Under the pieces are notes generated by a model, which was given only the letters and a program-made list of their open reading frames with translations, was not told the DNA's origin and did not search any database. Both the position numbers and the translations under genes were made by a program. From Octopus sinensis (Eukaryota), in NCBI RefSeq assembly GCF_006345805.1, contig NC_043023.1, positions 15,376,001 through 15,440,000 of the forward strand: a DNA stretch of 64,000 nt. Direction: 5' to 3'. Positions 1 to 64,000 of the stretch are shown here, piece after piece (within the stretch, counting starts at the first letter, position 1; the number at the start of each line of letters is the position of its first letter).

Positions 1-351
1 AATGTTCATACTCAGATGGGGCTCATTTATGTCATAATAACCTTACTTTTTCTGTGTCTGACCATGTCTTACAATCATCCTTAAAAATTAGCTGCTGTAG
101 TACAATGCAACAGTTATACCATCCTCTGGGTTATAACTGGATTCATCGAGTCCAAAACGTCATCTGGCAAAAATGTACTTCCCTCATTTTTGGACTTCTT
201 TGAATAAAGCTCCAATAATTGTTGTTGTTGCTGCCTTTGTCGATTTTTCAACAGTTTTAAAGAAGCTAATTAGTCTTCCATGATTTAACAATTTTGTATC
301 ACAAAAATTTGTTAACTGACCTGCAAGAGCTTCGAAACCCTCATCGCCAGA

Positions 352-589
352 TGTTGTAACATAATTGTTCCGTACAATAAATAAGATAACCAGAAAATTG
401 TAACAACAATCTAATGAACTAACAAATCTTTTAAGAACCAACATTCAATATTACTTAGGAAGTAAACCAAGTGACACCTTCCGACTTCAATTGACTCTGA
501 ACCGCAAACCCACTCAGATCGTTACTATTTATACTTTACTCGAACCAGTCTATCTCTCACAAGGGGACATGGTAACTCTCATCACAACA
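352..589 (-). mobile_element. Gypsy LTR (copy downstream of A); PBS and gag relic continue to the window start
   Basis: Reverse-complement paralog of 25363-25600, with TGTTGT...ACAACA termini and PBS TGGCGATGAGG. Confidence 0.8.
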
Positions 590-1540
590 GGTGCCATTCT
601 AACCAGATGCCCATCATAAATCCATGCTTGGTGTCTGGTAAGAACAAGACCATGAAAACCTGCTCTACAGAAGGATTTAGCAAAAAATAAGTATGATGAT
701 AATCACTTGCATGGGTTGAGCGGGGATGTGCTTGAACCATAGGTAGAGTGGGGCATTAGGCTTTTGAAAAATATTTCCCACTCTACACCCAAAACTGTGA
801 CAAACAGCAATAAGCCTCCAGCTAGTGCCAGAATATGTGGGCAGTAGCACAAAGGGTGCAGATCCTGGGATCCCTGAGTGTGTCCAGCAGAGGATAACTG
901 ATCACGGCTGGGAACTGGAGTGTAATACATTTGTGTCAAAATAATATATCCACAAGAAAACAGAGCAAATTAATATAATCAATATTGTTTGAATAAAAAA
1001 CACAAATCGTAATTAGTGAGTTGATGCAAATGAGGAAAATGTGAAAAATGAATTTATTTTGTAAAAAGTAATACATTTGCTGTATTTTATTCAGCAGGAC
1101 ATCTGTTTTATCATTGATATTGTTATTGATCAATATGAATAAGTATATGTTTAGTTAAGGTAGATTATTGAGAGAATGATTTAGCACAGATTACACAGTC
1201 ATAAGAATCTTCTCCTGTATGAATATGCTTGTGTTTAGTTTATTATTTCTCTCTATGAAAGAATGACTTGTCACAGATGTCACAGTGATATGATTTCTCT
1301 CCTGTATGAATGGATTTGTGATGAGTTCAATATTGTTCCACAGAGAATGATTTACCTCAGATATCACAGCAATAGAGTTTCTCTCCTGTATGAATACGTT
1401 TATAAGTATATACTGCATATTCCTGAGAGAATGATTTGCTGCAGACATCACAGTCACATAGTTTCTCTCCAGTATGAGCAGACTTGTAATTAATTAAATA
1501 TTTTCTTAAATGGAATGATTTGCCTGCAGATACTACAGTG

Positions 1541-2592
1541 CTATGGTTTGTCCCCTGTATTAATGCATTTGTGTCTATTTAAGTACCTCTTCTGAGAGAA
1601 TGATTTACCACAGATATAGCACTGATATGGTTTCTCACCTGTATGAACTGATTTGTGAGAATCAAGGTAACTTTTTTGAGAGAATGATTTACCACAAATA
1701 TCGCAGTGATGTGGTTTCTCTCCTGTATGTATGGCTTTGTGTTTAGTAAGGTTATATTTTTTAGGGAATGATTTACCACAGATATCACAGTGATATGGTT
1801 TCTCTCCAGTATGAACGACTTTGTGATAAGAAAGGGCAGTCTTTTGAGAGAATGATTTACCACAAATATCACATTGATATGGTTTCTCTCCTGTATGAGT
1901 GTATTTGTGATGAGTGAGGCAATATTTCTGAGTGAATGATTTACCACAAATATCACATTGATATGGTTTCTCTCCAGTATGAGTGTATTTGTGATGAGTG
2001 AGGCAATATTTCTGAGTGAATGATTTACCACAAATATCACATTGATATGGTTTCTCTCCAGTATGAGTGTATTTGTGATGAGTGAGGCTATATTTCTGAG
2101 TGAATGATTTACCACAAATATCACATCGATATGGTTTCTCTCCTGTATGAATGGATTTGTGAGTAGTGAAATAACTTTTTAATGAAAAGGATTTATCACA
2201 GATATCACACTGATATGGTTTCTCACCTGTGTGAATATATTTGTGAGAATTAAGGCTACTTTTTTGAGAGAATGATTTACCACAAATATCACACTGATGT
2301 GGTTTCTCTCCTGTATGAATGGATTTGTGTTTAGTAAGGTTATATTTTTTAGAGAATGATTTACCACAGATATCACAGTGATGTGGTTTCTCTCCAGTAT
2401 GAGTGTATTTGTGATGAGTAAGGTGACTTTTTCGAGAGAATGATTTACCACAAATATCACAGTAATATTTCTTTCCCCTGGATCAATACATTTGTGAACA
2501 GTGAGATTTCCCTTATTAGAAAAAGTCTTTTTACAGATATCACATTGGTCTGATAACTTTTCTCTTTCTTTTAACATCTCCAGACTATTCAT
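1541..2592 (-). pseudogene. C2H2 zinc-finger locus A (12 finger units, first and last degenerate), one early frameshift
   Basis: ATG 2592 ([17 protein letters not shown]). Relative to paralog I (CCAGGTGG), a 1-bp deletion at ~2475-2478 (CCAGGGG) shifts the frame after finger 1. The other frame holds continuous CxxC...HxxxH-TGEKP repeats to TAG at 1541-1543. The frameshift could be an assembly error. Confidence 0.9.
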
Positions 2593-3029
2593 TATTGTTC
2601 TATAGTATACAGACAGAAAATATATTTTCCCCTTCTTCTTTATATATATCTTCTACAGCAAATCTGATCTTGAATATCTGAAAATGATACAAACACCTTT
2701 CCAGATTTTCTCACATTCAAACACAATGCAAAATACTTTTGTAAATATTCCTGGCAACGAGGAAAACAAATGTTGCTATTAATTCAGAACAAATATTTCA
2801 CCGTTATTCACCAGAGATATATTATTTATAACGGCTGACATTCGTTTTCAAAACATGATCAATATTCATGATGTATCTCACGTAAAACTCCTTTATACGA
2901 GTATCTGAAATGACACAGAAACAGTAGAAGATATAGGAAAGACTTAAAAAGCAAAGGTTTAACAATAAAAATTATAACTACATTTTCATAATGATAAACT
3001 GTGGATATAAACTTTTACCCGAATAAATT

Positions 3030-4934: not shown

Positions 4935-5050
4935 GGTTAAACTAAAGCGTTACACCATTCAAAGAAACAAAAAAAAAATGTGTGTAATAGGTGTAAAACA
5001 AGCCAATGTGGTTAGCCATGGATGGCTTCTAAACTTCCTTTAGTTTAACC
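4935..5050. mobile_element. Minimal Merlin derivative (two termini, ~115 bp)
   Basis: GGTTAAACTAAAGCG at 4935 and CCTTTAGTTTAACC ending 5050. Confidence 0.75.
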
Positions 5051-6486: not shown

Positions 6487-7456
6487 ATGAATAGTCTGGA
6501 GATGTTAAAAGAAAGAGAAAAGTTATCAGACCAATGTGATATCTGTAAAAAGACTTATTCTAGTAAGGGAAATCTCACTGTTCACAAATTCATTCATGCA
6601 GGGGGGAAACAATATCATTGTGATATCTGCGGTAAATCATTCTCTCAAAAAAGTCACCTTACTCATCACAAATACAATCATACTGGAGAGAAACCATATC
6701 AGTGTGATATCTGTGGTAAATCATTCTCTCAAAGGAATGCCCTTTCTTATCAAAAAATTCTTTCATACTGGAGAGAAACCAAATCAATGTTGTATTTGCG
6801 GTAAATCATTCTCGCATAGAAGTTCCCTTGATTCTCACAAACACATTCATACAGGAGAGAAACCACATCAGTGTGATGTTTGTGGTAAATCATTCTCTCA
6901 AAAAAGTAGCCTTAATTCTCACAAATACATTCATACAGGTGAGAAACCGTATCAGTGTGATATCTGTGATAAATCCTTTTCATTAAAAAGTTATTTAACT
7001 ACTCACAAATCCATTCATACAGGAGAGAAACCATATCGATGTGATATTTGTGGTAAATCATTCACTCAGAAATATTGCCTCACTCATCACAAATACACTC
7101 ATACTGGAGAGAAACCATATCAATGTGATATTTGTGGTAAATCATTCTCTCAAAAGACTGCCCTTTCTTATCACAAAGTCGTTCATACTGGAGAGAAACC
7201 ATATCACTGTGATATCTGTGGTAAATCATTCCCTAAAAAATATAACCTTACTAAACACAAAGCCATTCATACAGGAGAGAAACCACATCACTGCGATATT
7301 TGTGGTAAATCATTCTCTCAAAAAGGTTACCTTGATTCTCACAAATCAGTTCATACAGGTGAGAAACCATATCAGTGCTATATCTGTGGTAAATCATTCT
7401 CTCAGAAGAGGTACTTAAATAGACACAAATGCATTAATACAGGGGACAAACCATAG
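6487..7456 (+). pseudogene. C2H2 zinc-finger locus B (11 finger units), one frameshift
   Basis: ORFs 6487-6804 and 6536-7456 overlap. There is one extra A in the A-run at 6752-6757. Ends TGDKP-TAG. Inverted paralog of A. Confidence 0.9.
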
Positions 7457-8406
7457 CACTGTAGTATCTGCAGTAAATTATTCCATTTAAGAAACTATTT
7501 AATTAATTACAAGTCTGCTCATACTGGAGAGAAACTATGTGACTGTGATGTCTGCAGCAAATCATTCTCTCAGGAATATGCTGTATATACTTATAAACGT
7601 ATTCATACAGGAGAGAAACTCTATTGGTGTGATATCTGAGGTAAATCATTCTCTGTGGAACAATATTGAACTCATCACAAATACATTCATACAGGAGAGA
7701 AATCATATCACTGTGACATCTGGGACAAGTCATTCTTTCATAGAGAGAAATAATAAACTAAACACAAACATATTCATACAGGAGAAGATTCTGATGACTG
7801 TGTAATCTGTGCTAAATCATTCTCTCAATAATCTACCTTAACTAAACATATACTTATTCATATTGATCAATAACAATATCAATGATAAAACAGATGTCCT
7901 GCTGAATAAAATACAGCAAATGTATTACTTTTTACAAAATAAATTCATTTTTCACATTTTCCTCATTTGCATCAACTCACTAATTACGATTTGTGTTTTT
8001 TATTCAAACAATATTGATTATATTAATTTGCTCTGTTTTCTTGTGGATATATTATTTTGACACAAATGTATTACACTCCAGTTCCCAGCCATGATCAGTT
8101 ATCCTCTGCTGGACACACTCAGGGATCCCAGGATCTGCACCCTTTGTGCTACTGCCCACATATTCTGGCACTAGCTGGAGGCTTATTGCTGTTTGTCACA
8201 GTTTTGGGTGTAGAGTGGGAAATATTTTTCAAAAGCCTAATGCCCCACTCTACCTATGGTTCAAGCACATCCCCGCTCAACCCATGCAAGTGATTATCAT
8301 CATACTTATTTTTTGCTAAATCCTTCTGTAGAGCAGGTTTTCATGGTCTTGTTCTTACCAGACACCAAGCAGGGATTTATGATGGGCATCTGGTTAGAAT
8401 GGCACC

Positions 8407-18278: not shown

Positions 18279-19268
18279 CTATGGTTTCTCTCCTGTACGA
18301 ATGTTTTTATGAGAGGTTAAAGAGCGCAAGCAAGACAATGATTTACCACAAATATCACACTCATAAAGTTTCTCTCCTGTATGAATGGATTTGTGATAAG
18401 TAAGGCTATGCTTATGGGAGAATGATTTACCACAAATACAACATTGATATGGTTTCTCTCCTGTATGAATGGATTTGTGAGAAGTAAGGTGAATTTTCTG
18501 AGAGAATGATTTACCACAAATATCGCATTGATATGGTTTCTCTCCAGTATGAATGGATTTGTGATAAGTAAGTCTATGCTTATGGGAGAATGATTTACCA
18601 CAAATACGACATTGATATGGTTTCTCTCCAGTATGAATGGATCTGTGACAAGTAAGGTGAATTTTCTGAGCGAATGATTTACCACAAATATCACAGCAAT
18701 ATGATCTTTCTCCTGTATGAATGTATTTGTGAGAAGTCAGGTGAATTTTTTGAGAGAATGATTTACCACAAATATCACAGCAATATGGTCTTTCTCCTGT
18801 ATGAATGTATTTGTGAGAAGTCAAGTGAATTTTCTGAGAGAATGATTTACCACAGATATCACAGTGATAAGGTTTCTCTCCTGTATGAGTGGATTTGTGA
18901 GAAGCAAGGTTACTTTTCCGAGAGAATGATTTACCACAAATATCACACTGATATGGTTTCTCTCCTGTATGAGTGGATTTGTGTCTAGTCAGGTTACATT
19001 TCTGAGAGAATGATTTACCACAAATATCACAGTGATATGGTTTCTCTCCTGTATGAATGTATTTGTGAGAAGAAAGGTGACATTTATCAGAGAATGAATT
19101 TCCACAGATATCACATTGATATGGTTTCTCACCTGTGTGAATGGATTTGTGTCTAGTAAGGTGAATTTCCTGAGAGAATGATTTACCACAAATATCACAG
19201 TGATATGGTTTCCTATCTGCATGAATGAATTTGTGAACAGTGAGATTTCCCTGATTAGAAAAAGTCAT
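18279..19268 (-). CDS. C2H2 zinc-finger protein C (329 aa, ~10 intact fingers)
   Basis: Open ORF of TGEKP-linked fingers. The family ATG (MNPQEM) at 19330 is out of frame; the in-frame ATG is at 19268. Paralog of G. Confidence 0.9.
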
Positions 19269-19299
19269 TTTACAGATATCACATTGATGTGATAATTTT

Positions 19300-20929
19300 C
19301 TGTTTCTTTTGTCATCTCTTGAGGATTCATTATTGTTCTATAGTATACAAACACAAAATATAATTTTGCTTCCTTTTTTTATATATTTCTATTGCTTATA
19401 TTTCCAGCAGTTCCGATCTTCATCAATTTCTGAAGATGATACAAACACCTTTGCAGATATCTCCCGCTCCAAACAGAATGTGAAAGACTTTAGCAAATAT
19501 TCCAGGCAATGATGGAAACAAATGTTGCCATCAATTCAGAAGAAATATTTCACAGTTTTCCACCATAGACAAATCGTATAAAAAGAGTTATGTCAAATAT
19601 TTATAACATCTTCCATTAGATGATCAATATTCATGAAGTATCACTAACATTTCACCTCCTGAAATGACACAGAAACAGAAGAAGATATAGGAAAGACTTA
19701 AAAAGCAGAGATTCAACTATAAAAAAAATATAACTACATCTTCATAATGATAAACTGTGGATATAATCCTTTAATTTGTCTTTGAAATTTATTTATGGTA
19801 ATTTATAATATGGTAACCCTTTTGTTACCATATTTCTGCTGAGATTCAGTGTGTTTCTTTCAATTATTTTAAATATAATAAAGAATTTAGTAAACTAACT
19901 TAGTTATCATTCAACTAGTGTTAGGAACATAAATTGTAACTAAGGTTTGGTGGAAGATTTTAATTCAAAACTTATGAAAACAAGACATTTTACCACAGAG
20001 CCAGAGCCCGTTTTGGCCGGGTTAGTAACAAGAGGGTGTGGTCTTTGAAATTTATTTTGTTATTAAAATTATATGATACAACCTTGTGTAATGTCTACAT
20101 TTACACGGACTTCAGTTCCTCTTCCTTCAGATATTATGTAAAACATTATCCCTTTAGTGTTCAGATTATTCTGTTAAATGTAATTCTTTTTCACTCAAAT
20201 TGTTTTGAATTAATCATGCAATATCTTATAGCTTTGAGGTTTCAATGATGTGATTGTTTATTTCTAGAATGTCAATGTAGGTTAGGTGTGAGAGGCCAGA
20301 TACCACCAGTTTGAATATAAAACATGCAGAATATCTGGGCCTGATATGGCCGGTTTAAACAATAAAGGGTTCAACTATAGGATATTGGACAATAATATGA
20401 TAAGTGAATACTGTTTAACCCTAGGTTATCCCTGACTGAGCAGATCTATTATTGAAATTAGGTAATGTTCATGATTGTTACAACTTCTGTAACAGATCAA
20501 ACATAAACATAAACTACAATTTAGTGAACCAACCCATCATGACTTTTCCTCTCGTAACTTTATCAATAATAAAAACAAACTGCACTCACATATGTTGAAG
20601 GTGTGGTCACTAATTTAGAGAAAGTGTTCTGTGAATTGACGTATGAAGATTAGAGCCAGGACAGAATGGCGATCCTTCGGTATAGGTACACACGTGACTC
20701 TGTTTACGTTTCTGAAGATAACAAAAACACTTTTCTCTCCCCCCCCCCTACATATAAAGAAACACCTTTTTGAAATGTATCCAGTACTTCCGAAGTACAC
20801 CGGTATTTATACCGTAAGATCGCCTTTCTTTTTAAAACAAAGTAAATAAAACACAAAAGCATAGGTACTACTAGCGAAGACTGGACCCGGTACGCGCTAG
20901 CTAGTCGTAAGTAGTCGTTCCTACAACGA
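19300..20929. repeat. 5' region of C, inverted paralog of the 5' region of G (43727-45290)
   Basis: Mirror ORFs 20036-20248/44425-44637 and shared MITE B and C fragments. Confidence 0.92.
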
Positions 20930-23264: not shown

Positions 23265-24374
23265 ATGAATAGTCTGGAGATGTTAAAAGAAAGAGAAAAG
23301 TTATCAGACCAATGTGATATCTGTAAAAAGACTTTTTCTAATAAGGGAAATCTCACTGTTCACAAATTCATTCATGCAGGGGGGAAACTATATCATTGTG
23401 ATATCTGTGGTAAGTCATTCTCTCGAAAAAGTCACCTTACTCATCACAAATACACTCATACTGGAGAGAAACCATATCAGTGTGATACCTGTGGTAAATC
23501 ATTCTCTCAAAGGACTGTCCTTTCTTATCACAAATTCGTTCATACTGGAGAGAAACCATATCACTGTGATATCTGTGGTAAATCATTCACTCAGAAATGT
23601 AGCCTCACTCATCACAAATACACTCATACTGGAGAGAAACCATATCACTGTGATATTTGTGGTAAATCATTCTCTCAAAAGACTGCCCTTTCTTATCACA
23701 AATTCGTTCATACTGGAGAGAAACCATATCACTGTGATATCTGTGGTAAATCATTCTCTAAAAAATATAACCTAACTAAACACAAATCCATTCATACAGG
23801 AGAGAAACCAAATCAATGTCGTATTTGCGATAAATCATTCTCTCAAAGAAGTTACCTTGATTCTCACATATCCATTCATACAGGGGAGAAACCACATCAG
23901 TGTGGTGTTTGTGGTAAATCATTCTCTCAAAAGAGTAACCTTAATTCTCACAAATACATTCATACAGGTGAGAAACCATATCAGTGTGATATCTGTGATA
24001 AATCCTTTTCATTAAAAAGTTATTTAACTACTCACAAATCCATTCATACAGGTGAGAAACCATATCGATGTGATATTTGTGGTAAATCATTCACTCAGAA
24101 ATGTAGCCTCACTCATCACAAATACATTCATACTGGAGAGAAACCATATCAATGTGATATTTGTGGTAAATCATTCTCTCAAAAGACTGCCCTTTCTTAT
24201 CACAAATTCGTTCATACTGGAGAGAAACCATATCACTGTGATATTTGTGGTAAATCATTCTCTAGAAAATATAACCTTACTAAACACAAATCCATTCATG
24301 CAGGAGAGAAACCATATCACTGTGATATCGGTGCTATATCTGTGGTAAATCATTCTCTCAGAAGAGGTACTTAA
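23265..24374 (+). CDS. C2H2 zinc-finger protein D (369 aa, 12 intact fingers, frameshifted tail)
   Basis: ORF MNSLEM... with 12 fingers. A deletion junction at 24325-24329 shifts only the last ~15 codons. Confidence 0.92.
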
Positions 24375-25362
24375 ATAGACACAAATGCATTAATACAGGG
24401 GACAAACCATAGCACTGTAGTATCTGTAGTAAATTATTCCGTTTAAGAAACTATTTAATTAATTACAAGTCTGCTCATACTGGAGAGAAACTATGTGACT
24501 GTGATGTCTGCAGCAAATCATTCTCTCAGGAATATGCTGTATATACTTATAAACGTATTCATACAGGAGAAAAACTCTATTGGTGTGATATCTGAGGTAA
24601 ATCATTCTCTGTGGAACAATATTGAATTCATCACAAATCCATTCATACAGGAGAGAAATCATATCACTGTGACATCTGTGACAAGTCATTCTTTCATAGA
24701 GAGAAATAATAAACTAAACACAAACATATTCATACAGGAGAAGATTCTTATGACTGTGTAATCTGTGCTAAATCATTCTCTCAATAATCTACCTTAACTA
24801 AACATATACTTATTCATATTGATCAATAACAATATCAATGATAAAACAGATGTCCTGCTGAATAAAATACAGCAAATGTATTACTTTTTACAAAATAAAT
24901 TCATTTTTCACATTTTCCTCATTTGCATCAACTCACTAATTACGATTTGTGTTTTTTATTCAAACAATATTGATTATATTAATTTGGTCTGTTTTCTTGA
25001 GGATATATTATTTTGACACAAATGTATTACACTCCAGTTCCCAGCCATGATCAGTTATCCTCTGCTGGACACACTCAGGGATCCCAGGATCTGCACCCTT
25101 TGTGCTACTGCCCACATATTCTGGCACTAGCTGGAGGCTTATTGCTGTTTGTTACAGTTTTGGGTGTAGAGTGGGAAATATTTTTCAAAAGCCTAATGCC
25201 CCACTCTACCTATGGTTCAAGCACATCCCCGCTCAACCCATGCAAGGGATTATCATCATACTTATTTTTTGATAAATCATTCTGTAGAGCAGGTTTTCAT
25301 GGTCTTGTTCTTACCAGACACCAAGTAGGGATTTATGATGGGCATCTGGTTAGAATGGCACC

Positions 25363-30200: not shown

Positions 30201-30739
30201 GACCAAAGACAGATATGGCCTTGCTCGGCATGTAGAAAAGAAGTCAGGAGAAACTCCATGTAGTGTACCCAGTACAAGCTATGGACACATATTGTTCATT
30301 AGATTATAGGCTGCAGATCGTGGGATAGCCTAAGCATGTCCAGCAGAGAACAACTGATCATCGTTGGGAACTGGAATGTGATACAATGGTGTCGAAATGA
30401 TATATCCCCAAGAAAACAGCAAATTAATGTAATTAAAATTGTTTGAATGAAAACCACACACATTATAATTAATGAGTTGATGCAAATGAGGAAAATGTAA
30501 AAAATTTATTTGTCTGAAAAAAAGTAATACAATTGCTGTATTTTATTCCCCATTTTATCACTGGTATTGTTATTGATCAATATCAATAAATACAGGTTTA
30601 GTTAAATTACATTAAGAAGATTATTTTGCACAGATAACACAGCAATATGTCTTTTCTCCTGTATGAATGCATTTAAAATTAGTTAAACAACATAATCCTA
30701 AGAGAAGGATTTACTACAGATATCAAAACCAAAAATCAA

Positions 30740-31040
30740 AATCATAATCGATCAACATCAATGGAATTCGTAGCTGTGATACCAGTGCCGGTGGCACATA
30801 AGTGAACCATCCGAACGTGGCCGTTTGCCAGCCTCGTCTGGCACCTTTGCAGGTGGCACGTAAAAAGCACCCACTACAATCACGGAGTGGTTGGCGTTAG
30901 GAAGGGCATCCAGCTGTAGAAACACTGCCAGATCAGACTGGAGCCTGGCACAGCCTTCTGGCTTCCCAGACCCCAGTTGAACCGTCCAACCCATGCTAGC
31001 ATGGAAAGCAGACGCTAAATGATGATGATGATGATGATCA
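30740..31040 (+). mobile_element. Retroposon 3' end with (TGA)n tail (copies ~27570-27830, 28330-28460, 28640-28860, 37200-37430, 47440-47680, 53700-53910, 54100-54235, 54725-55010, 55290-55445)
   Basis: Shared GGAGTGGTTGGCGTTAGGAAGGGCATCCAGCTGTAGAAAC...CCAACCCATGCTAGCATGGAAA...GATGATGATG. Confidence 0.85.
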
Positions 31041-31121
31041 CAGTGATACAATATCTGCCCAATCTAAGTGGATTTGTGACAAAAATATTTTCTTACGCAG
31101 AATGATTTACTGCAGATATTA

Positions 31122-31277
<156 letters not shown>

Positions 31278-31345
31278 TTATGAGTGGACTTATGATTACT
31301 CAAATATTTTCTTACACAGAATGATTTACTGCAGATATCACAGTG

Positions 31346-32566
31346 CTATGATTTCTCTCTTGTATGAATGTATTTGTGTCTATTAAAGTTACTTTTACGA
31401 GAGAATGATTTACCACAGATATCACAGTGATATCGTTTCTCTCCTGTATGAATGTATTTGTGTCTAGTAAGGTTACTTTTTCCAGTGAATGATTTACCAC
31501 AGATATCACACTGATATGGCCTCTCATCAGTGTGAGTAAGTTCATGAACAGTTAAATTACTTCTTAATACAAAGGATTTATCACAGATATTGCAGTGATA
31601 TGGTTTCTCTCCTGTATGAATGGATTTGTGAGAAGTAAGGTTACCTTTTTGAGAGAATGATTTACCACAAATATTGCAGTGATATGGCTTCTCACCTGTA
31701 TGTGTATATTTGTGAGTAGTTAAATGACTTTTTAATGGAAAGGATTTATCACAGATATTGCAGTGATATGGTTTCTCTCCTGTATGAATGTGTTTGTGTG
31801 TAGTAAGGTTACTGTTATGAGAGAATGATTTTCCACAAATATCACAGTGATATGGTTTCTCTCCTGTATGAATGTATTTGTGATGAGTAAGATGATCTTT
31901 CTTAGAGAATGATTTACCACAGATATCACAGTGATATGGTTTCTCTCCTGTATGAGTGTATTTGTGAGAAATAAGGCTACCTTTTCGAGAGAATGATTTA
32001 CCACAAATTTCGCAGTGATATGGCTTTTCATGAGTATGGAAACGTTTGTGTCTAGTTAAATCACTCCTTAGTGAAAAGGATTTATCACAGATATCGCATT
32101 GATATGGTTTCTCTCCTGTATGAATGTATTTGTGAGTTTTAAGGTGACTTTTTTGAGAGAATGATTTACCACAAGCATCACAGTGATGTTGTTTCTCTCC
32201 GGTATGAATGTATTTGTGACAAGTTAGGCCAGTCTTTTGAGAGAATGATTTACCACAGATATCACAGTGATGTGGTTTCTCTCCTGTGTGAATGTATTTG
32301 TGACAAGTAAGGCTACCTTTTTGAGAGAATGATTTACCACAAATTTCGCAGTGATATGGTTTCTCTCCTGTATGAATGTATTTGTGATGAGTAAGATGAT
32401 CTTTCTGAGAGAATGACCTGCCACAGATATCACAGCGATATTGCTTTCCACTTGGATCAATACACTTGTGAACAGAGAGATTTGCTGTATTAGAAAAAGT
32501 CTTTTTACAGATATCACATTGGTCTGATAATTTTTCTCTTTCTCTTGTCATCTCCGGCGGATTCAT
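31346..32566 (-). CDS. C2H2 zinc-finger protein E (406 aa, 13 intact fingers plus degenerate first finger)
   Basis: Uninterrupted ORF. ATG MNPPEM at 32566; the frame stays open upstream to 32698 without an ATG. Confidence 0.93.
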
Positions 32567-38653: not shown

Positions 38654-40289
<1,636 letters not shown>

Positions 40290-40899
40290 CACTGTGATAT
40301 CTGCAGTAAATAATTGTGTGTTCAGTATTATTTAACAGATCACAATTCCACTCATGCTAGATATGTCAGTGTGATATCTGTGTTAAATCTTTCTCTGAGG
40401 AATGTGCTATATATACTCATAAATATTTTCTAATAGGAGAGAAGACCTATCACTGTGATATGTATAGTAAATCATTCTGTGTGGAACAATATGTAACTAA
40501 TCCCAAATGCATTCATAAGGGTGGCAAAAAGCACAACACTGTGGCATCTGTGATGTCATTCTCTTGTAATTACTTAACGAAATACAAACATATTCATACA
40601 AGATTGGATTCTTGTGGCTGTGTTATCTTTGGTAAATCATTCTCTCAATAATGTACCTGAACTTAACATATATGTATCCATATTACTCAATAACAATATC
40701 AGTGATATTGTGAATTAATGTAATAAACAGAAAGAAAATTAAAGTTGTCTTACTCTTTTTTCTCTGCTCATTTTATACGCAGAACATTCTACCAAATGTT
40801 GTAATGGTGAGACACACGTAAATTATAGAATTCACAGTGGATCAGTGTATGATAAAAGTCACACACGTCTCCAAACTAACCTACTATAAGCGTTTATTT

Positions 40900-45282: not shown

Positions 45283-46755
45283 ATGAATCCTCAAGAGATG
45301 ACAAAAGAAAGAAAAACGTTATTATACCGATGTGATATCTGTAAAAAGACTTATTGTAATAAGAGAAATCTCACTGTTCACAAATTCATTCATGCAGGGG
45401 GGAAGCCATATCACTGTGATGTCTGTGGTAAATCATTCTCTGATAAAAGTCACCTTACTAAACACAATTACATTCATACAAGAGCGAAACGGTATCACTG
45501 TGATATTTGTGGAAAGTCATTCTTTCAGAAGGTTCACCTTACTTCTCACAAATACAGTCATACAGGTGAGAAACCATATCAATGTGACATTTGTGGTAAA
45601 TCATTCTCTCATAAAAGTAGCCTTACTCAACACAAATCCATTCATACAGGAGAGAAACCTTATCAGTGTGATATTTGTGGTAAATCATTCTCTCATAAGA
45701 TTAGCCTTACTTGGCACAAATCCACTCATACAGGAGAGAAACCATATCAGTGTGATATTTGTGGTAAATCATTCTCTGGTAAAAGTAACCTTACGAATCA
45801 CAAATCCATTCATACAGGTGAGAAACCATATTACTGTGATATTTGTGGTAAATCATTCTCCTTTAAGCATAGCCTTACTTATCACAAAGTCAGTCATACA
45901 GGGGAGAAACCACATCCCTGTGATATATGTGGAAAATCATTCTCTCAGAAAATTCACCTGACTTCTCACAAATTCATTCATACAGGAGAGAAACCTTATC
46001 AATGTGATATTTGTGGTAAATCATTCTCCCATAAGCACAGCCTTACTTATCACTTATCCATTCATACAGGAGAGAAACCTTATCACTGTGATATCTGTGG
46101 AAAATCATTCTCTCAGAAAATTCACCTGACTTCTCACAAATACATTCATGCAGGGGAGAAACCTTATCAATGTGATATTTGTGGTAAATCATTTTCTCAA
46201 AAGACTGGCCTTACTTATCACAAATCCGTTCATACAGGAGAGAAACCATATCAATGTGATATCTGTGGTAAATCTTTTTCATTAAAACGTAATTTAACGA
46301 CTCACAAATTCATTCATACAGGTGAGAAACCATATCAGTGTGATATTTGTGGTAAATCATTCTCTCAAATGAGTAGCCTTACTTATCACAAATCCGTTCA
46401 TACAGGAGAGAAACCATATCCCTGTGATATCTGTGGTAAATCTTTTTCATTAAAACGTAATTTAACTACTCACAAATTCATTCATACAGGTGAGAAACCA
46501 TATGAATGTGATATTTGTGGTAAATCATTCTCTCAAAAAAGTCACCTTTCTTCTCACACATCCATTCATACAGAAGAGAAACCACATGACTGTGATATTT
46601 GTGGTAAATCATTCTCTCAGAAGAGAGGCCTTACTAAACACAAATACATTCATACAGGAGAGAAACCTCATCAATGTGATGTCTGCGGAATGTCATTCTC
46701 TCAAAGACGTTACCTTGATTCTCACAAACACATTCATACAGGAGAGAAACCCTAG
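45283..46755 (+). CDS. C2H2 zinc-finger protein G (490 aa, 17 fingers)
   Basis: Uninterrupted ORF from ATG MNPQEM to TGEKP-TAG. Confidence 0.95.
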   Translation: MNPQEMTKERKTLLYRCDICKKTYCNKRNLTVHKFIHAGGKPYHCDVCGKSFSDKSHLTKHNYIHTRAKRYHCDICGKSFFQKVHLTSHKYSHTGEKPYQCDICGKSFSHKSSLTQHKSIHTGEKPYQCDICGKSFSHKISLTWHKSTHTGEKPYQCDICGKSFSGKSNLTNHKSIHTGEKPYYCDICGKSFSFKHSLTYHKVSHTGEKPHPCDICGKSFSQKIHLTSHKFIHTGEKPYQCDICGKSFSHKHSLTYHLSIHTGEKPYHCDICGKSFSQKIHLTSHKYIHAGEKPYQCDICGKSFSQKTGLTYHKSVHTGEKPYQCDICGKSFSLKRNLTTHKFIHTGEKPYQCDICGKSFSQMSSLTYHKSVHTGEKPYPCDICGKSFSLKRNLTTHKFIHTGEKPYECDICGKSFSQKSHLSSHTSIHTEEKPHDCDICGKSFSQKRGLTKHKYIHTGEKPHQCDVCGMSFSQRRYLDSHKHIHTGEKP

Positions 46756-48319
46756 CACTTTAATATCTGCAGTAAATCATTCAAAGTCTATTCATAAAGG
46801 AGACAAACCATATAACTGTGATATCTGTGGTAAATCATTCTCTTGGGAATGTGCTATATATACTCATAAATGTATTTATTCAAGAGAGAAGCCCTATCAC
46901 TGTGATAACTATGCTAAATCAATCTCTGTGGAACAATATTTAGCTAATCTCAAATTCATTCATACAGGAAAGAAACCATAGCACTGTCAGTCTTTTACCA
47001 TGTGGGTTAACTCAACATGAATACATTCATACAGGAGAAAAACCGTAACGCTGTGACATCAGTGATTAATCATTCTCTCGTAATTACTTAACTAAACACA
47101 AACATATTCATACAGGGTAAGATTCTGATGACTGTAATCTGTGCTAAATCATTCTCTCAATAATCTACCTTAACTAAACATATTCTTATTCATATTGATC
47201 TATAAAAATAACTGGCATAAAATAGATGTCTTATCTTTCTTTTACTTGGTTCAGTCATTTGACTGTGGCCATGCTGGAGCATCGCCTTTAGTCGAGCATA
47301 TCGACCCCAGGACTTATTCTTTGTAAGCCTAGTACTTATTCTCTTTTGCCGAACTGCTAAGTTACAGGGACATAAACACACCAGCATCGGTTGTCAAGCG
47401 ATGTTGCGGGGACAAACAAAGGCACACAATCGTACACACACGTGGCACGTAAAAAGCACCATCTGATCGTTGCCGTTTGCCAGCCTCGTCTGGTACCTAT
47501 GTAGGTGGCACGTAAAAAGCACCCACTACACTCATGGAGTGGTTAGGAAGAGCATCCAGCTGTAGAAACACTGTCAGATCCGACTGTAGCCTGGTGCAGC
47601 CTCTTGGCTTCCCAGACTCTGGTTGAACCGTCCAACCCATGCTAGCATGGAAAACGGACGTTAAACGATGATGATGATATATACGACGGGCTTCTTTTCA
47701 GTTTCCGTCTACGAAATCCACTCACAAGGCTTTGGTCGGCCCGAAGCTATAGTAGAAGACACTTGCCCAAGGTGCCACACAGTGGGACTGAACCCGGGAC
47801 CATGTGGTTGGTAAGCAAGCTACTTACCATACAGCCACTCCTACGCCTGGTGAAATAAAATACAGCAATTGTATTACTTTTTATTGAATAAATTAATTGT
47901 TTCCATTTTCCTCATTTGCTTCAACTCATTAATTATGATGTGTGTTTTCCATTCAAATAATATTGATTAAATTAATTTGTTCTATTTTCTTGTGGATGTG
48001 TCATTATCACACCAATATCTGACATTCCAGTTCCCAATTACGATCGGTTGTGTCCTCCTGGACATGTTTTGAGTCTCAGGATTTGCAGTATTTGTGATAG
48101 CAACCCACATATTCTAGAACAAACTGGAGGCCTACTGCTTTTGTCATAGTGTTTGGTGTAGAGTGGATGATACAGCCTACTTATTTTTTGCTAAATCATT
48201 CTGTAGATCCGGTTTTCATGGTCTTGTTCTTACCAGACACCAAGCAGGGATTTATGATGGGCATCTTGGTTAGAATGGCACCTGTTGTGATGAGTGTAGA
48301 CTGGTCCGAGTAAAGTATG

Positions 48320-50963: not shown

Positions 50964-52300
50964 ATGAATCCACCGGAGATGACAAGAGAAAGAGAAAAAT
51001 TATCAGACCAATGTGATATCTGTAAAAAGACTTTTTCTAATACAGCAAATCTCACTGTTCACAAGTGTATCGATCCAAGTGGAAAGCAATATCGCTGTGA
51101 TATCTGTGGTAAATCATTCTCTAAGAAAGAGCATCTTACTCATCACAAATATATTCATACAGGAGAGAAACCATATCAATGTGGTATTTGTGGTAAATCA
51201 TTCTCTCATAGGAGTAGCCTTACTTGTCACAACTCAGTTCATACAGGAGAGAAACCGTATCACTGTGACATCTGTGGTAAATCGTTCTCCCAAAAAAGTC
51301 ACCTTAAAACTCACAATTACATTCATACGGGAGAGAAACCATATCAATACGAGATCTGTGATAAATCCTTTTCACTAAGGAGTGATTTAACTAAACACAA
51401 ACTTTCACATACTCATGAAAAGCCATATCACTGCGAAATTTGTGGTAAATCATTCTCTCGAAAATATAACCTTGATTCTCACAAATACATTCACACAGGA
51501 GAGAAACCACATCAGAGTGATATTTGTGGTAAATCATTCTCTCAAAAAGGTTGCCTGACTTCTCACAAATACATTCATACAGGAGAGAAACGATATCACT
51601 GAGATATATGTAATAAATCCTTTTCAATAAGAAGTTCTTTAACTAAACACAAACTTATTCATGCTCATGAGAAGCCATATCATTGTGATATCTGTGATAA
51701 ATCATTCTCGCGTAAAAGTAATTTTAATAGACACAAATACATTCATACAGGAGAGAAACCACATCACTGTGATATCTGTGGTAAATCATTCTCTCATAAC
51801 AGTAACCTTACTAAACACAAATTCATTCATACAAGAGAGAAACCACATCACTGTGATATCTGTGGTAAATCATTCTCTCATAACAGTAACCTTACTAAAC
51901 ACAAATACATTCATACAGGAGAGGAACCATATCACTGTGATATTTGTGATAAATCCTTTCATTAAAAAGTCATTTAATTACTCACAAACTTACACATACA
52001 GGTGAGAAGCCACATCACTGCGATATTTGTGGTAAAACATTCCCTCATAAGAATAGCCTTACTTATCACAAATCAATTCATACAGGAGAGAAACCATATC
52101 ACTGCAATATCTGTGGTAAATCCTTTGTAGTGAGAAGTAATTTAACTGCTCATGAACTTACTTACACTAATGAAAGGCCATATCAATGTGATATCTGTGG
52201 TAAATCATTCTCTGGAAAAAGTACCCTTAATAGACACAAATACATTCATACAGGAGAGAAACCATATCAGTGTGATATCTGTAGTAAATCATTCTCTTAG
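50964..52300 (+). pseudogene. C2H2 zinc-finger locus H, truncated paralog of E
   Basis: ATG MNPPEM 50964. Cys lost in fingers 5 (YEIC) and 7 (SDIC). TGT>TGA stop at 51600-51602 and a 1-bp deletion at ~51960. Finger repeats continue to ~52300. Confidence 0.9.
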
Positions 52301-52799
52301 GATTATGCTGTTTAACTAATTTTAAATGCATTCATACAGGAGAGAAGACATATTGCTGTGTTATCTGTGCAAAATCATTCTCTTAACGTAATTTAACTAA
52401 ACCTGATTTATTCATATTGATCAATAACAATGCCAGTGATAAAATGGGGAATGAAATACAGCAATTGTATTACTTTTTTTGAGACAAATAAATTTTTTAC
52501 ATTTTCCTCATTTGCATCAACTCATTAATTATGATGTGTGTGGTTTTCATTCAAACAATTTTAATTACATTAATTTGCTGTTTTCTTGTGGATATATTAT
52601 TCCGACACCATTGTATCACATTCCAGTTCCCAACGATGATCAGTTGTTCTCTGCTGGACATGCTTAGGCTATCCCACGATCTGCAGCCTATAATCTAATG
52701 AACAATATGTGTCCATAGCTTCTACTGGGTACACTACATGGAGTTTCTCCTGACATCTTTTCTACATGCCTAAAAGGGCCATCTCTGTCTTTGGTCTTT

Positions 52800-58248: not shown

Positions 58249-59198
58249 GGTGCCATTCTAACCAGATGCCCATCATAAATCCCTGCTTGGTATCCGGTAA
58301 GAACAAGACCATGAAAACCTGCTCTACAGAATGATTTAGCAAAAAATAAGTATGATGATAATCACTTGCATGGGTTGAGCGGGGATGTGCTTGAACCATA
58401 GGTAGAGTGGGGCATTAGGCTCTTGAAAAATATTTCCCACTCTACACCCAAAACTGTGACAAACAGCAATAAGCCTCCAGCTAGTGCCAGAATATGTGGG
58501 CAGTAGCACAAAGGGTGCAGATCCTGGGATCCCTGAGTGTGTCCAGCAGAGGATAACTGATCATGGCTGGGAACTGGAGTGTAATACATTTGTGTCAAAA
58601 TAATATATCCACAAGAAAACAGAGCAAATTAATATAATCAATATTGTTTGAATAAAAAACACAAATCGTAATTAGTGAGTTGATGCAAATGAGGAAAGTG
58701 TGAAAAATGAATTTATTTTGTAAAAAGTAATACATTTGCTGTATTTTATTCAGCAGGACATCTGTTTTATCATTGATATTGTTATTGATTAATATGAATA
58801 AGTATATGTTTAGTTAAGGTAGATTATTGAGAGAATGACTTAGCACAGATTACACAGTCATAAGAATCTTCTCCTGTATGAATATGTTTGTGTTTAGTTT
58901 ATTATTTCTCTCTATGAAAGAATGACTTGTCACAGATGTCACAGTGATATGATTTCTCTCCTGTATGAATGTATTTGTGATGAGTTCAATATTGTTCCAC
59001 AGAGAATGATTTACCTCAGGTATCACAGCAATAGAGTTTCTCTCCTGTATGAATACGTTTATAAGTATATACAGCATATTCACAATAGAATGATTTGCTG
59101 CAGACATCACAGTCACATAGTTTCTCTCTAGTGTGAGCAGACTTGTAATTAATTAAACATTTTCTTAAACAGAATGATTTACTGCAGATACTACAGTG

Positions 59199-61836
59199 CT
59201 ATGGTTTTTCCCCTGTATTAATGCATTTGTGTCCATTTAAGTACCTCTTTTGAGAGAATGATTTACCACAGATATGGATTCTCGTGTGTATGAACGTGTT
59301 TGTGATCAGTTAAATATTTTTTTAAACAGAATGACTTATCACAGATATCGCAAGAATATGGTCTCTCTGCAGTGTGAATGTATCTATGAGAGGTTAAACT
59401 GCTTCTAGAAGAAAATGATTTACACAGATATATCACAGGGATATGGATTGTCTCCTGTATGTGTGTATTTGTGATAAGCAAGGCGACTTTTTTCAGAGAA
59501 TGCTACACCACAGATATCACAGTGATATGGTTTCTCTCCTTTATGAACTGATTTGTGATAAGTAAGGCCACTCCTATGAGAGAATGATTTTCCACATATA
59601 TTGCAGTGATATGGTTTCTCTCCAGTATGAATAGGTATATGAGAAGTGAGGCTGCATTTCTGAGTGAATGATTTACCGCAAATATCACAGGGATATGGCC
59701 TCACATTAGTATGAATGAGTTTGTGAGTAGTTAAATAACTTTTTAATGAAAAGGATTTATCACAGATATCACACTGATATGGTTTCTCACCTGTATGAAC
59801 TGATTTGTGATTAGTAAGGTGACCTTTTTGAGAGAATGATTTACCACAAATATCACATTTATATGGTTTCTCTCCTGTATGAGTGTATTTGTGATAAGTA
59901 AGGCCTCTCCTTTGAGTGAATGATTTACCACAAATATCACAGGGATATGGCCTCTCATGAGCATGAGTGAGTTCGTGAGTAGTTAAATGATTTTTAATGA
60001 AAAGGATTTATCACAGATATCACACTGATATGGTTTCTCACCTGTATGAACTGATTTGTGATGTGTAAGGTGACCTTTTTGAGAGAATGATTTACCACAA
60101 ATATCACATTTATATGGTTTCTCTCCTGTATGAGTGTATTTGTGATAAGTAAGGCCTGTCCTTTGAGTGAATGATTTACCACAAATATCACAGGGATATG
60201 GCCTCTGATGAGCATGAGTGAGTTCGTGAGTAGTTAAATGACTTTTTGATGAAAAGGATTTATCACAGATATCACACTGATATGGTTTCTCACCTGTATG
60301 AACTGATTTGTGATATGTAAGGTGACCTTTTTGAGAGAATGATTTACCACAAATATCACATTTATATGGTTTCTCTCCTGTATGAGTGTATTTGTGATAA
60401 GTAAGGCCTGCCCTTTGAGTGAATGATTTACCACAAATATCACAGGGATATGGCCTCTCATGAGCATGAGTGAGTTCGTGAGTAGTTAAATAACTTTTTA
60501 ATGAAAAGGATTTATCACAGATATCACACTGATATGGTTTCTCATCTGTATGAACTGATTTGTGAGTAGTAAGGTTACATTTTTGAGAGAATGATTTACC
60601 ACAAATATCGCAGTGATGTGGCTTCTCACGTGTATGTGTAAGTTTGTGAGTAGTTAAATAAGTTTTTGATGAAAAAGATTTACCACAGATATCACACTGA
60701 TATGGTTTCTCACCTGTATGAACTGATTTGTGATAAGTAAGGTGACCTTTTTGAGAGAATGATTTACCACAAATATCACATTTATATGGTTTCTCTCCTG
60801 TATGAGTGTATTTGTGATGAGTGAGGCTACATTTCTGAGTGAATGATTTACCACAAATATCACATTTATATGGTTTCTCTCCTGTATGAGTGTATTTGTG
60901 ATAAGTAAGGCCTGCCCTTTGAGTGAATGATTTACCACAAATATCACAGGGATATGGCCTCTCATGAGCATGAGTGAGTTCGTGAGTAGTTAAATAACTT
61001 TTTAATGAAAAGGATTTATCACAGATATCACACTGATATGGTTTCTCATCTGTATGAACTGATTTGTGAGTAGTAAGGTTACATTTTTGAGAGAATGATT
61101 TACCACAAATATCGCAGTGATGTGGCTTCTCACGTGTATGTGTAAGTTTGTGAGTAGTTAAATGAGTTTTTGATGAAAAAGATTTACCACAGATATCACA
61201 CTGATATGGTTTCTCACCTGTATGAACTGATTTGTGATAAGTAAGGTGACCTTTTTGAGAGAATGATTTACCACAAATATCACATTTATATGGTTTCTCT
61301 CCTGTATGAGTGTATTTGTGATGAGTGAGGCTACATTTCTGAGTGAATGATTTACCACAAATATCACATCGATATGGTTTCTCTCCTGTATGAATGGATT
61401 TGTGAGTAGTTAAATAACTTTTTAAAGAAAAGGATTTATCACAGATATCACACTGATACGGTTTCTCACCTGTATGAATGTATTTGTGAGAATCAAGGGA
61501 ACTTCTATGAGAGAATGATTTACCGTAAATACGACATTGATATGGTTTCTCTCCTGTATGAATGGATTTGTGTTTAGTAAGGTTATATTTTTTAGAGAAT
61601 GATTTACCACAGATATCACAGTGACGTGGTTTCTCTCCAGTATGAGTGTATTTGTGATGAGTAAGGTAACTTTTTTGAGAGAATGATTTATCACAAATAT
61701 CACAGTAATATTTCTTTCCACCTGGATCAATACATTTGTGAACAGTGAGATTTCCCTTATTAGAAAATGTCTTTTTACAGATATCACATTGGTCTGATAA
61801 CTTTTCTCTTTCTTTTAACATTTCCAGACCATTCAT
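59199..61836 (-). CDS. C2H2 zinc-finger locus I (31 finger units; 617-aa ORF covers the first 21, later frameshifts)
   Basis: ATG MNGLEM 61836, ORF to 59983. A 1-bp deletion at ~59990, a net +1 shift at ~59430 and an 11-bp deletion at ~59275. The family stop TAG is at 59199-59201. Confidence 0.92.
59778..60532 (-). repeat. 252-bp (3-finger) tandem repeat x3 inside I
   Basis: Units start at 59778, 60029 and 60281. Confidence 0.95.
60336..61368 (-). repeat. 504-bp (6-finger) tandem duplication inside I
   Basis: Fingers 6-11 match fingers 12-17; offset exactly 504. Confidence 0.95.
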
Positions 61837-62309
61837 TATTGTTCTGTAGTATACAGACAGAAAATATATTTCCCCCTTCTTCTTTATATATATCTTCTAC
61901 AGCAAATCTGATCTTGAATATCTGAAAATGATACAAACACCTTTCCAGATTTTCTCACGTTCAAACACAATGCAAAATACTTTTGTAAATATTCCTGGCA
62001 ATGAGGAAAACAATTGTTGCTATCAATTCAGAAGAAATATTTCACCGTTATTCACCATAGATATATTATATAAACAGAGTTATTATCTATTATTTATAAC
62101 GGCTGACATTCGTTTTTAAAACATGATCAATATTCATGATGTATCTCACGTAAAACTCCTTTATACGAGTATCTGAAATGACACAGAAACAGTAGAAGAT
62201 ATAGGAAAGACTTAAAAAGCAAAGGTTTAACAATAAAAATTATAACTACATTTTCATAATGATAAACTGTGGATATAAACTTTTACCCGAATAAATTACA
62301 CTTTAAAAT

Positions 62310-63342
62310 GATACTCATGACACAAGACATTACTTTCGTCTATAATGACCTGAGTCATAAATCTAATACTTTCTCTAGTTTAGTTTCAATGCACCCAAAC
62401 AAACAAAAGGAAAAGCAGTGTAAATAACGGACAGAGTCAAAACTATTGAAAAGGTTGCAAGACGCAATGAAAATTTTAGGAAAAAAGGAAATAAGTAAGA
62501 AATAACTGCAAAATTTTACCGATGAGTGTGCTAAATTATAAGGCATCAACCACAGTGAAAATTTTGTTGATCCAACAAATGCATTGGTGCACATACAGAC
62601 GATAGAGAGATTGTGGGGGTCAGTTAAGAGATCAGTTGTTCGCCCAGGCATTCGTGCCTGTTACTTAAAGCAATACCTCTCCAAGTTCCTATTTATGGAA
62701 AGCATCAAACCTGCTGCCAAGAAAATACACGTATTCTTATTGGCAGCAGCAAGTCTTTATCTTGATAATTTTTTCCTCCAACTCATCTCATTTCTTTATC
62801 ATCAATGTCGATGGACCACTCAAAGAGGTATGTATACATTATCATTTTCGTAACATAATTTCTGTAGTATTTCAAGATGTTTCTGACACGTATTTTGATT
62901 CATATAGCGAAGATCTGACATTTCTTCACTTGTTCCACTTTTTTTTTTTTTTTTGCGAAATATGTACAAAAATACGGAGTTTATGATTCATGTGTGAGTG
63001 TGTGTTCTTGATACTCGTTTAGAACAAGTAGTTTTACACCAATTACACTATTTTTTCTTAGTTTAAAGGCCGTGGACTGAAGATGTGAAATTTCCGAAGC
63101 CTCTCCCCCACCCCCCTTTCGCGAGCGCGCATTTTTTTTTTATCATATTCGTTTAGAGCAATTTGTTTTACACCTATTACGCTATTTTTGTTTTTGTGCC
63201 CGGGTCAGACGGTTTCGGAAATTCCCGATGTAAATTTCCGAGGCCTCTCCCCCACCCCTCTTTCGCGAGTGCGCATTTTTTTTGTCATATTCGTTCATAT
63301 TTTTTTTAGTTTCTTTGAATGGTGTAACGCTTTAGTTTAACA
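62310..63342 (+). mobile_element. Merlin relic, paralog of 3030-4245
   Basis: ORF 62584-62853 (VHIQTIERLWGSVKR), same terminal repeat and GTTAATTC flank. Confidence 0.8.
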
Positions 63343-64000
63343 GTTAATTCTATTCGCCAATAAATGTCTTTAATTAAGCCAAGAAACTTTGGATTTTACT
63401 TGGCATGGCCATGAAAAAGCACCGAATTTTTAGCTTTTTTTTTTTTATTACAGTAGATATTCCATTTGCTGACTGTGTCGATTCAAAGCCGTCTATTGAT
63501 TTATCATAGAGGTATTATTTGCTAAACATCTATATTTGCTGTTCCTGTCGAAATAGTCCACGTTAATTATGTCTGATTTTTGCTCCTGTGAATAATCTGC
63601 AATCTAATAAAACAGAAATAGCTGACTGCAACATGAGGCCAGTGGTACCGCGATGATAAAATAAAATACACAAACGTATTCAACACATGTGAATGCAGAA
63701 TTTCTTTAAAAGATTTACATTATTAATAAGGTTACAAAAGGAAAAGTCGTGGTGGGTTGGTGTTTAAATTATAGTTGTGTTTATGTTTGACGTATTCTAA
63801 AAGTCAGGACAGTCGGGAACACAAGCGAATTTCATTAAGAGGTCTGCTCAGTCAGGGGTGACCATGGGCTAAACAACAGTGACTTACCACGTTTCTGAAG
63901 ATAGTAGAATATTATTGTCCACCGTTTTGTAGTTTAACATTTTCCATAATATCTGAAGGTGGAGGGGTTAAACTAAAGCGTTACACCATTCAAAGAAACA

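Follow-up and report, generated by a model that had tools for sequence, protein, structure and literature searches.

How does a dense group of C2H2 zinc-finger genes arise and diversify in a mollusc, and does it take a dedicated rearrangement system to do so? We investigated this question in a 64,000-bp stretch of DNA (positions 15,376,001 to 15,440,000 of contig NC_043023.1, assembly GCF_006345805.1; henceforth the window), in which a preliminary description, made from the letters alone, had seen nine zinc-finger loci (here A to I) assembled from the parts of a self-rearranging modular cassette. We consider it highly likely that these loci form a lineage-specific poly-C2H2 cluster which grew by ordinary birth-and-death evolution in an Octopus genome. 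It is not a new rearranging system but an already described mode of gene-family evolution: with five of the nine copies broken, the cluster is better described by segmental duplication, turnover of finger units and short conversion than by a self-rearranging modular system. The anatomy and history of the cluster can be read directly from the data, while the activity of its products we infer by analogy. Specifically, the D, E, G and I proteins would recognise particular DNA sequences and act as transcriptional regulators, possibly with transposons among the sequences they target.

Nine loci with a common anatomy

A search of the window for stop-free C-x2-4-C-x12-H-x3-5-H patterns in all six frames returned 126 fingers, all of them inside nine clusters whose strand order from A to I (- + - + - + + + -) is the one originally given. 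The three divergent pairs named at that time also hold, as A/B, C/D and E/F lie head to head with their start codons 3.9, 3.9 and 6.1 kb apart, respectively. The nine arrays have a period of 84 bp, which was also recovered by Tandem Repeats Finder, and a DNA profile of the 84-bp unit (built from intact units) found 181 units when decayed ones were included (17, 16, 12, 18, ~22, 24, 22, 17 and 36 units in loci A to I, respectively). Intact, in-frame fingers numbered 9-26 per locus, which replaces the earlier figure of 11-31 fingers per exon. The intact D and G proteins matched the Pfam families zf-C2H2 (E=4e-62 and 7e-89, respectively) and zf-H2C2_2 (E=7e-95 and 6e-138). The window is AT-rich (GC ~0.32-0.47), and its nine close paralogs within 64 kb constitute a local cluster in a coleoid genome, as in the octopus-specific C2H2 expansions, which are known for expression chiefly in nervous and embryonic tissue.

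As had been proposed, the nine loci derive from one unit, with a common upstream core, start context, leader and exon of 84-bp fingers, followed in eight of the nine by a decayed tail. The core extends from -1 to about -440/-510 (only to -186 in B), and each core carries two conserved motifs of a pyrimidine tract plus AG, at about -380 and at -7. All nine loci have the same start context, namely a pyrimidine tract and a YAG 7 nt ahead of the ATG, and in all nine a leader of 14 residues (MNxxEMx[KR]ER[EK]KLS) precedes finger 1. Between the subfamilies defined below, the DNA of this leader is ~80-87% identical, which is similar to the adjoining non-coding core. The core, with TGTTTCT..TTTCAG at about -380, is kept beside two zinc-finger genes of Octopus sinensis (~70-77%), on par with the identity of the coding arrays (72-74%); conservation of the core in these relatives about as well as the arrays argues for constraint. 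The -380 motif is consistent with a real splice acceptor, and in E it is followed by stops in all frames, as read from the alignment. One O. sinensis relative has the same build, with a 33-residue acidic leader and a single-exon array in a frame of 664 amino acids (aa).

The decayed fingers described after the coding exon were recovered as a homologous tail of 5-6 units behind the stop in every locus except C; being common to eight of the nine loci, this tail was already decayed in their common ancestor. Beyond it, A, B, D and I have the same 3' flank, of which G retains a part (at 47801-48300) and E, H and F a weak resemblance. The flank of A, B, D and I is what had been called the head of a Gypsy long terminal repeat in five copies. 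The Gypsy identity is unproven: the flank gave no Pfam match even at E<=10 and no PDB sequence match. A short open reading frame (ORF) in the B flank (9123-9440) contains the motif FDTGSDISIIN, with a retropepsin-like FDTGS.

Reading frames are intact in four of the nine loci (D, E, G and I) and broken in the other five (A, B, C, F and H; Table 1). F and H are certainly decayed. In C, loss of one base after the ATG and ahead of finger 1 leaves the ATG out of frame, and in I a frameshift beyond the open frame is followed by six further fingers and then by the decayed tail. Breakage of five of the nine loci fits passive birth and death, not a maintained system.

The arrays are also open in a second sense frame and sometimes in antisense (e.g., 1582-2178 on the minus strand, and 45302-45958 and 18656-18985 on the plus strand). 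This results from their repeated codon pattern and is an easy source of false gene calls.

Consistent with the earlier observation that no effector domain is visible, Pfam matches of the D and G proteins were confined to C2H2 finger families, with no KRAB (PF01352), and gene-strand open stretches of at least 35 aa upstream of B, D, E, F, G, H and I matched no Pfam family at E<=0.05. Membership of the KRAB family would require such an N-terminal domain, encoded by upstream exon(s), along with KAP1/TRIM28 recruitment and transposon silencing. Looking up the exact G and D protein sequences yielded no recorded gene. When G was compared with proteins in general, the matches were generic zinc-finger proteins at 37-60% identity, most of them from vertebrates and of little use for judging origin. 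The sole specific match of a leader-specific search was one weak O. sinensis protein (47% identical), and absence of further matches is weak evidence since the index used for the search probably skips words as frequent as those of fingers.

Block duplication, finger turnover and short conflicting tracts

Self-comparison, together with painting of the best non-self matches in 200-bp pieces, divided the loci into the subfamilies {A,B,D,I}, {C,G} and {E,H}, with F alone. Flanks are 94-100% identical within a subfamily and ~20-25% divergent between subfamilies, and a neighbour-joining tree of the upstream core recovered ABDI, CG and EH with 100% bootstrap support each. Upstream core, leader, tail and 3' flank are concordant at this level, which contradicts the earlier suggestion of independently recombining parts: promoter, untranslated region, finger array and transposon flank do not behave as separate modules.

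The duplicated pieces exceed the size of a gene (~5-12 kb) and differ in their end points. A two-gene block comprising D and E recurs inverted as H and I, while positions 1-4969 (A and the start of the B upstream region) recur directly as 57657-64000, implying a tenth gene beyond the window end. A copy of the far-upstream module (see below) at 63811-63959 suggests the same, namely a plus-strand gene past base 64000 that would be the partner of I as B is of A. The head-to-head interval of C and D contains an inverted repeat, which is read as the scar of an inverted duplication.

Unit-level alignments revealed that copies with flanks only 1.6-4% apart had gained and lost whole fingers. Locus I has an internal duplication of 504 bp (6 units) with an exact run of 323 bp (60337-60659 = 60841-61163); three-unit blocks are duplicated in I and D, and units are triplicated in A. 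Across 121 intact fingers, entropy at the contact positions -1, 2, 3 and 6 was 2.4-3.0 bits (2.8) versus a mean of 0.69 elsewhere, the zinc ligands were invariant and the linkers nearly so. When fingers were matched between recent copies, the amino acid differed at 4-41% of contact codons (21-41% in four of six pairs) versus 2-11% of the others, a signal which the excess of silent change discussed below makes suggestive only, and not a formal test of selection.

Mosaicism in the cluster is real but small-scale. The leader tree groups ABDI (100% bootstrap) and EH (99%), whereas the finger 1 tree groups AEHI (98-99%) and gives no support for ABDI. The incongruence between parts that the modular proposal entailed was found for finger 1 against core and leader, the other parts being congruent by subfamily. 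Five of the six sites supporting the AEHI|BCDFG split fall within 17 bp, and finger 1 reads KCIDP in A, I, E and H, with loss of the second zinc-binding histidine, and KFIHA in B, C, D, F and G. A Sawyer-type permutation of polymorphic sites found identity to be clustered (p=0.0005), with significant fragments between D and F and between B and F (both in finger 1) and between F and G (finger 3). Locus F is a patchwork over ~800 bp, nearest to C/G, then E/H, C/G again, D and then G, and its finger 3 is 98% identical to that of G. Within {A,B,D,I}, the 5' end has 23 sites for AI|BD and 0 for AB|DI versus 6 and 8 in the 3' flank (Fisher p=8e-5), where the count of 23 takes in finger-3 columns that are non-orthologous between A/I and B/D (a hand estimate that leaves them out gives p ~0.003) and the four-taxon sites of the 3' flank (8/2/6) are nearly star-like and resolve little alone.

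The conflicting tracts are short (17 to ~100 bp in finger 1, and single finger units), with further conflict at the variable ends of duplicated blocks, and their limits do not match the borders of promoter, intron, array or flank. These patterns are signatures of short-tract gene conversion and unequal exchange. The differing nearest relatives noted for the parts of the cassette do exist between adjacent segments, but inside the coding exon and at block ends only.

Proposed history and competing explanations

We propose that the ancestral gene had ~0.5 kb of conserved upstream DNA with splice-acceptor-like motifs, an ATG and a 14-residue charged leader, continued by a single exon of tandem 84-bp units, a stop, an already decayed finger tail and the 3' flank. 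Copying was local and produced blocks of ~5-12 kb in either orientation, including one or more with two genes. The arrays then changed by gain and loss of single fingers and of blocks of 3-6, the DNA-contacting residues diverged fastest after copying, and short tracts were copied between paralogs by gene conversion. Transposons inserted differently in each copy, and frameshifts or stops disabled about half of the copies.

Several points weigh against this account. The lesions in A, B and C, three of the five that disable a locus, are indels of one base within short base runs and might reflect assembly errors, in which case fewer genes are dead than counted here. An N-terminal coding exon of fewer than 35 residues, or a motif outside Pfam, would escape the upstream scan. 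Finally, silent change in matched fingers exceeds that in the flanks (nucleotide divergence between E and H is ~8% in fingers versus ~3% in flanks); it may be that not all matched fingers truly correspond to each other, or that homogenisation has affected the flanks.

The alternative that survives best, although we consider it unlikely, is that the cluster is dead DNA, i.e., a satellite-like amplification of a finger pseudogene unit whose frames are open only because the copies are young. Four frames of 369-617 aa have stayed open in arrays large enough to be hit easily by frameshifts, variation is concentrated at contact residues while zinc ligands and linkers are nearly invariant, and the core with its acceptor-like motif is kept beside distant O. 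sinensis paralogs about as well as the arrays are. These observations are difficult to reconcile with dead DNA, even if five of nine copies are disabled, an old decayed tail is carried by every copy except C, a zinc ligand is missing from finger 1 of A, I, E and H, divergence of flanks within subfamilies is only 1.6-4%, and searches retrieved neither a close annotated relative nor an exact gene call on record.

A stronger claim than birth and death would be that the leader and the atypical finger 1 form a new KRAB-independent effector or recruitment motif, and that selection favours finger exchange between neighbours for new anti-transposon specificities; we regard this as very unlikely.

It is still less probable that the cluster is a dedicated modular diversification system, in which parts recombine independently to make finger genes that watch the embedded transposons. 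Adjacent segments do give strongly conflicting trees with significantly clustered identity, and F is a patchwork of three subfamilies, but the tracts in conflict are short stretches within the coding exon that do not fall at module borders, and core, leader, tail and 3' flank are concordant by subfamily. Likewise, the cluster is rich in transposon-derived DNA and a genome-wide prediction has octopus finger motifs enriched in transposons (PMC10547256), but five of nine copies are broken and the far-upstream module is missing in A and also in D and I, whose frames are intact. Pfam scans of ORFs and upstream stretches showed no recombinase, and neither these scans nor inverted-repeat scans of four short regions brought up recombination signals, at which no search was aimed.

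That a mobile element carries or includes the unit, which would then have spread by transposition instead of segmental duplication, is barely credible, since the 3' flank with its FDTGS motif after A, B, D and I and the weak IS1595-type transposase fragment upstream of I (with a homologous stretch upstream of A) stand against duplicated blocks with differing end points (one of them with two genes), transposon identities that are unconfirmed, copies that are all local, and a unit seen to be bounded by no terminal repeats (target-site duplications were not searched for).

Birth-and-death evolution of such genes is well documented. Emerson and Thomas reported positive selection at contact residues, conversions detected with GENECONV and gain and loss of fingers in recent poly-zinc-finger paralogs (PMC2604467), and Kauzlaric et al. 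described mouse clusters with recombination, duplication, pseudogenes and a particular transposon content, in which finger-coding units were duplicated, deleted and inverted (PMC5363842). The octopus cluster resembles the vertebrate KRAB clusters (human chromosome 19, mouse) in its tandem and inverted paralogs, single finger exon and TGEKP-linked C2H2 units, as well as in gain, loss and internal duplication of fingers, contact residues that change fastest, short conversions, many pseudogenes and transposon-rich surroundings (PMC2604467, PMC5363842). Unlike them, its proteins and upstream stretches have no KRAB, SCAN or BTB and only a 14-residue leader, and its host is a mollusc.

Octopus- and squid-specific C2H2 expansions and clusters have been documented (PMC12513265, PMC9068888, PMC9795677), and the loci studied here share with them local clustering, long arrays and recent duplication in a single lineage. 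They differ from the expansions on record in that the leader subfamily was not retrieved from annotated proteomes (the sole specific match being the one at 47%), and that literature covers trees, expression and chromosome maps, not the fine structure seen here. Wells et al. predicted octopus zinc-finger motifs to be enriched in transposon consensus sequences, and described FiNZ, a KRAB-less fish family with a short N-terminal motif (PMC10547256). A KRAB-less, transposon-linked finger expansion in octopus is already published (PMC10547256, PMC12513265, PMC9068888). FiNZ of cyprinid fish is similar in being a large KRAB-less family with a short charged N-terminus and a proposed anti-transposon role (PMC10547256); it differs in being a defined 28-residue domain with knock-down evidence, whereas the octopus leader is no better conserved than adjacent non-coding DNA. 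The window provides a compact example of how an octopus finger cluster grows and decays, by block duplication in two orientations, unit turnover, short conversion and rapid pseudogene formation. The processes of vertebrate KRAB clusters are also at work in this KRAB-less mollusc family, and they involve no new mechanism.

Upstream module, transposon content and annotation

Ahead of B, C, E, G and H, and partly ahead of F, lies a gene-oriented module of 150-200 bp with the core ATTATTGTCCAATATTTTGTAGTTTAAC. The promoter/exon-1 module of the preliminary description stands to this extent as a repeated element, which is absent ahead of A, D and I. The module abuts the upstream core in E, H and F, and is separated from it by a spacer of ~0.6 kb in C/G and ~1.4 kb in B. 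It was not found beside the two O. sinensis zinc-finger genes, so that a promoter role gains no support from another species; its CCAAT-like core is conserved neither in B nor in the window-end copy, and nothing in the sequence shows the module to be a promoter or an exon. Nor did we recover an intron filled with Helitrons and miniature inverted-repeat transposable elements (MITEs): DNA between module and core exists only in B (1.4 kb) and C/G (0.6 kb), and the sole Helitron-like coding piece lies 3' of C. In A, D and I, a transposase-like stretch replaces the module; the weak transposase ORF upstream of I has a homologous stretch at ~3150-3460, upstream of A.

In the C/G spacer (19860-20393; 44266-44852), a 190-bp piece matches, at 77-78% identity, the DNA that lies 160-340 bp ahead of an O. 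sinensis zinc-finger gene (locus coordinates 9657-9842). This match indicates that the spacer may be ancestral and lost elsewhere, and not an insertion.

Table 1. Positions of the zinc-finger loci, their parts and other features in the window.
Feature	Locus	Position (strand)	Details
Locus	A	1131..2592 (-)	ATG 2590-2592; 17 units; 10 intact fingers in frame 1544-2482; 1-bp deletion after finger 1
Locus	B	6487..7865 (+)	ATG 6487; 16 units; +1 frameshift in A-run, finger 3; frame from ATG 105 aa
Locus	C	18282..19330 (-)	ATG 19328-19330; 12 units, 11 intact; decayed tail missing
Locus	D	23265..24821 (+)	open frame 23265-24374, 369 aa, 12 fingers; decayed tail after; 18 units in total
Locus	E	30651..32566 (-)	open frame 31346-32566, 406 aa, 13-14 fingers; decayed tail split by insertion
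Locus	F	38654..40682 (+)	24 units; frameshifts in finger 4 and at unit 18
Locus	G	45283..47194 (+)	open frame 45283-46755, 490 aa, 17 fingers; decayed tail after
Locus	H	50964..52415 (+)	17 units; TGA in finger 8; cysteines lost in fingers 5, 7; later frameshift
Locus	I	58793..61836 (-)	frame 59983-61836, 617 aa, 19-21 fingers; 36 units
Finger cluster (C2H2 search)	A	1643-2461 (-)	
Finger cluster (C2H2 search)	B	6535-7354 (+)	
Finger cluster (C2H2 search)	C	18381-19283 (-)	
Finger cluster (C2H2 search)	D	23313-24299 (+)	
Finger cluster (C2H2 search)	E	31140-32434 (-)	
Finger cluster (C2H2 search)	F	38702-40271 (+)	
Finger cluster (C2H2 search)	G	45331-46737 (+)	
Finger cluster (C2H2 search)	H	51096-52249 (+)	
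Finger cluster (C2H2 search)	I	59284-61704 (-)	
Upstream core	A	2593-3030 (-)	
Upstream core	B	6301-6486 (+)	
Upstream core	C	19331-19790 (-)	
Upstream core	D	22820-23264 (+)	
Upstream core	E	32567-33055 (-)	
Upstream core	F	38143-38653 (+)	
Upstream core	G	44853-45282 (+)	
Upstream core	H	50478-50963 (+)	
Upstream core	I	61837-62285 (-)	
Far-upstream module	B	4780-4928 (+)	
Far-upstream module	C	20394-20606 (-)	
Far-upstream module	E	33086-33234 (-)	
Far-upstream module	F	38029-38099 (+)	partial
Far-upstream module	G	44068-44265 (+)	
Far-upstream module	H	50297-50445 (+)	
Far-upstream module		63811-63959 (+)	extra copy at window end
Shared 3' flank	A	1-1130 (-)	cut by window start
Shared 3' flank	B	7866-9422 (+)	
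Shared 3' flank	D	24822-26399 (+)	
Shared 3' flank	I	57237-58792 (-)	
Two-gene block	D+ E-	22555-33502	recurs inverted as H+ I-, 50017-62545
Inverted repeat	between C and D heads	20944-21524, 22033-22611	arms 96-99% complementary; ~508-bp spacer
Conversion tract	3' half of finger 1	23368..23384 (+)	D coordinates; ~2474-2489 in A; five sites {A,I,E,H} vs {B,C,D,F,G}
Finger 1	F	38698..38777 (+)	identical to D finger 1 (23309-23388); adjoining upstream DNA only ~81% to D
PIF1-like helicase ORF	3' of C	15132-16181 (-)	15477-16181 piece; Pfam PF05970 E=2e-32
Palindromes, ~0.6-0.9 kb		29349-30148, 11775-12662, 42005-42610	arms 83-94% complementary, meeting within 6-8 nt
SINE-like repeat, 387 bp		26427-27189 (tandem), 36406-36800, 56037-56825, 9717-10056, 47677-47848	tandem pairs twice
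LINE reverse-transcriptase-like fragments		near 28538-28870 and 53659-54024	QADDLVLIAES
IS1595/ISXO2-type transposase C-terminus, weak	upstream of I	62542-62850 (+)	antisense to finger genes; E=0.026, below Pfam cut-off

Among the transposon-derived features (Table 1, where SINE and LINE denote short and long interspersed nuclear elements), the PIF1-like ORF was best matched by many O. bimaculoides proteins (81-84%) and is probably a Helitron remnant. The palindromes look like a foldback or long-terminal-repeat MITE-like family, and single arms of ~330 bp were also present in an O. sinensis locus. The SINE-like repeat is 85-93% identical to O. sinensis copies; Rfam and tRNA scans gave no match, leaving this ~390-bp repeat with no detectable tRNA head. 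Interspersed repeats of ~400 and ~330 bp are common to the window and an O. sinensis locus, at up to 91-93% identity; together with the relatives of the PIF1-like ORF and the leader match, they place the window in an Octopus genome. The stretches 28538-29398, 48233-49174 and 52825-54024 contain fragments with reverse-transcriptase motifs plus other open stretches, and Pfam found nothing in the three stretches scanned (28538-28870, 48233-48724 and 48845-49174). The upstream region common to A and I contains a 143-bp tandem repeat in 2.5 copies (3830-4197 and ~63050-63300).

The cluster is apparently unannotated, and its value for annotation is that single-exon arrays of this kind appear to be missed or mis-modelled. 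An example is found on O. sinensis CM016860.1 (locus coordinates 9875-11869), where the model P0121, a zinc finger protein 714-like of 112 aa, sits on the single-exon ORF of 664 aa. P0121 appears to be a mis-spliced model, its sequence jumping between successive fingers of this ORF.

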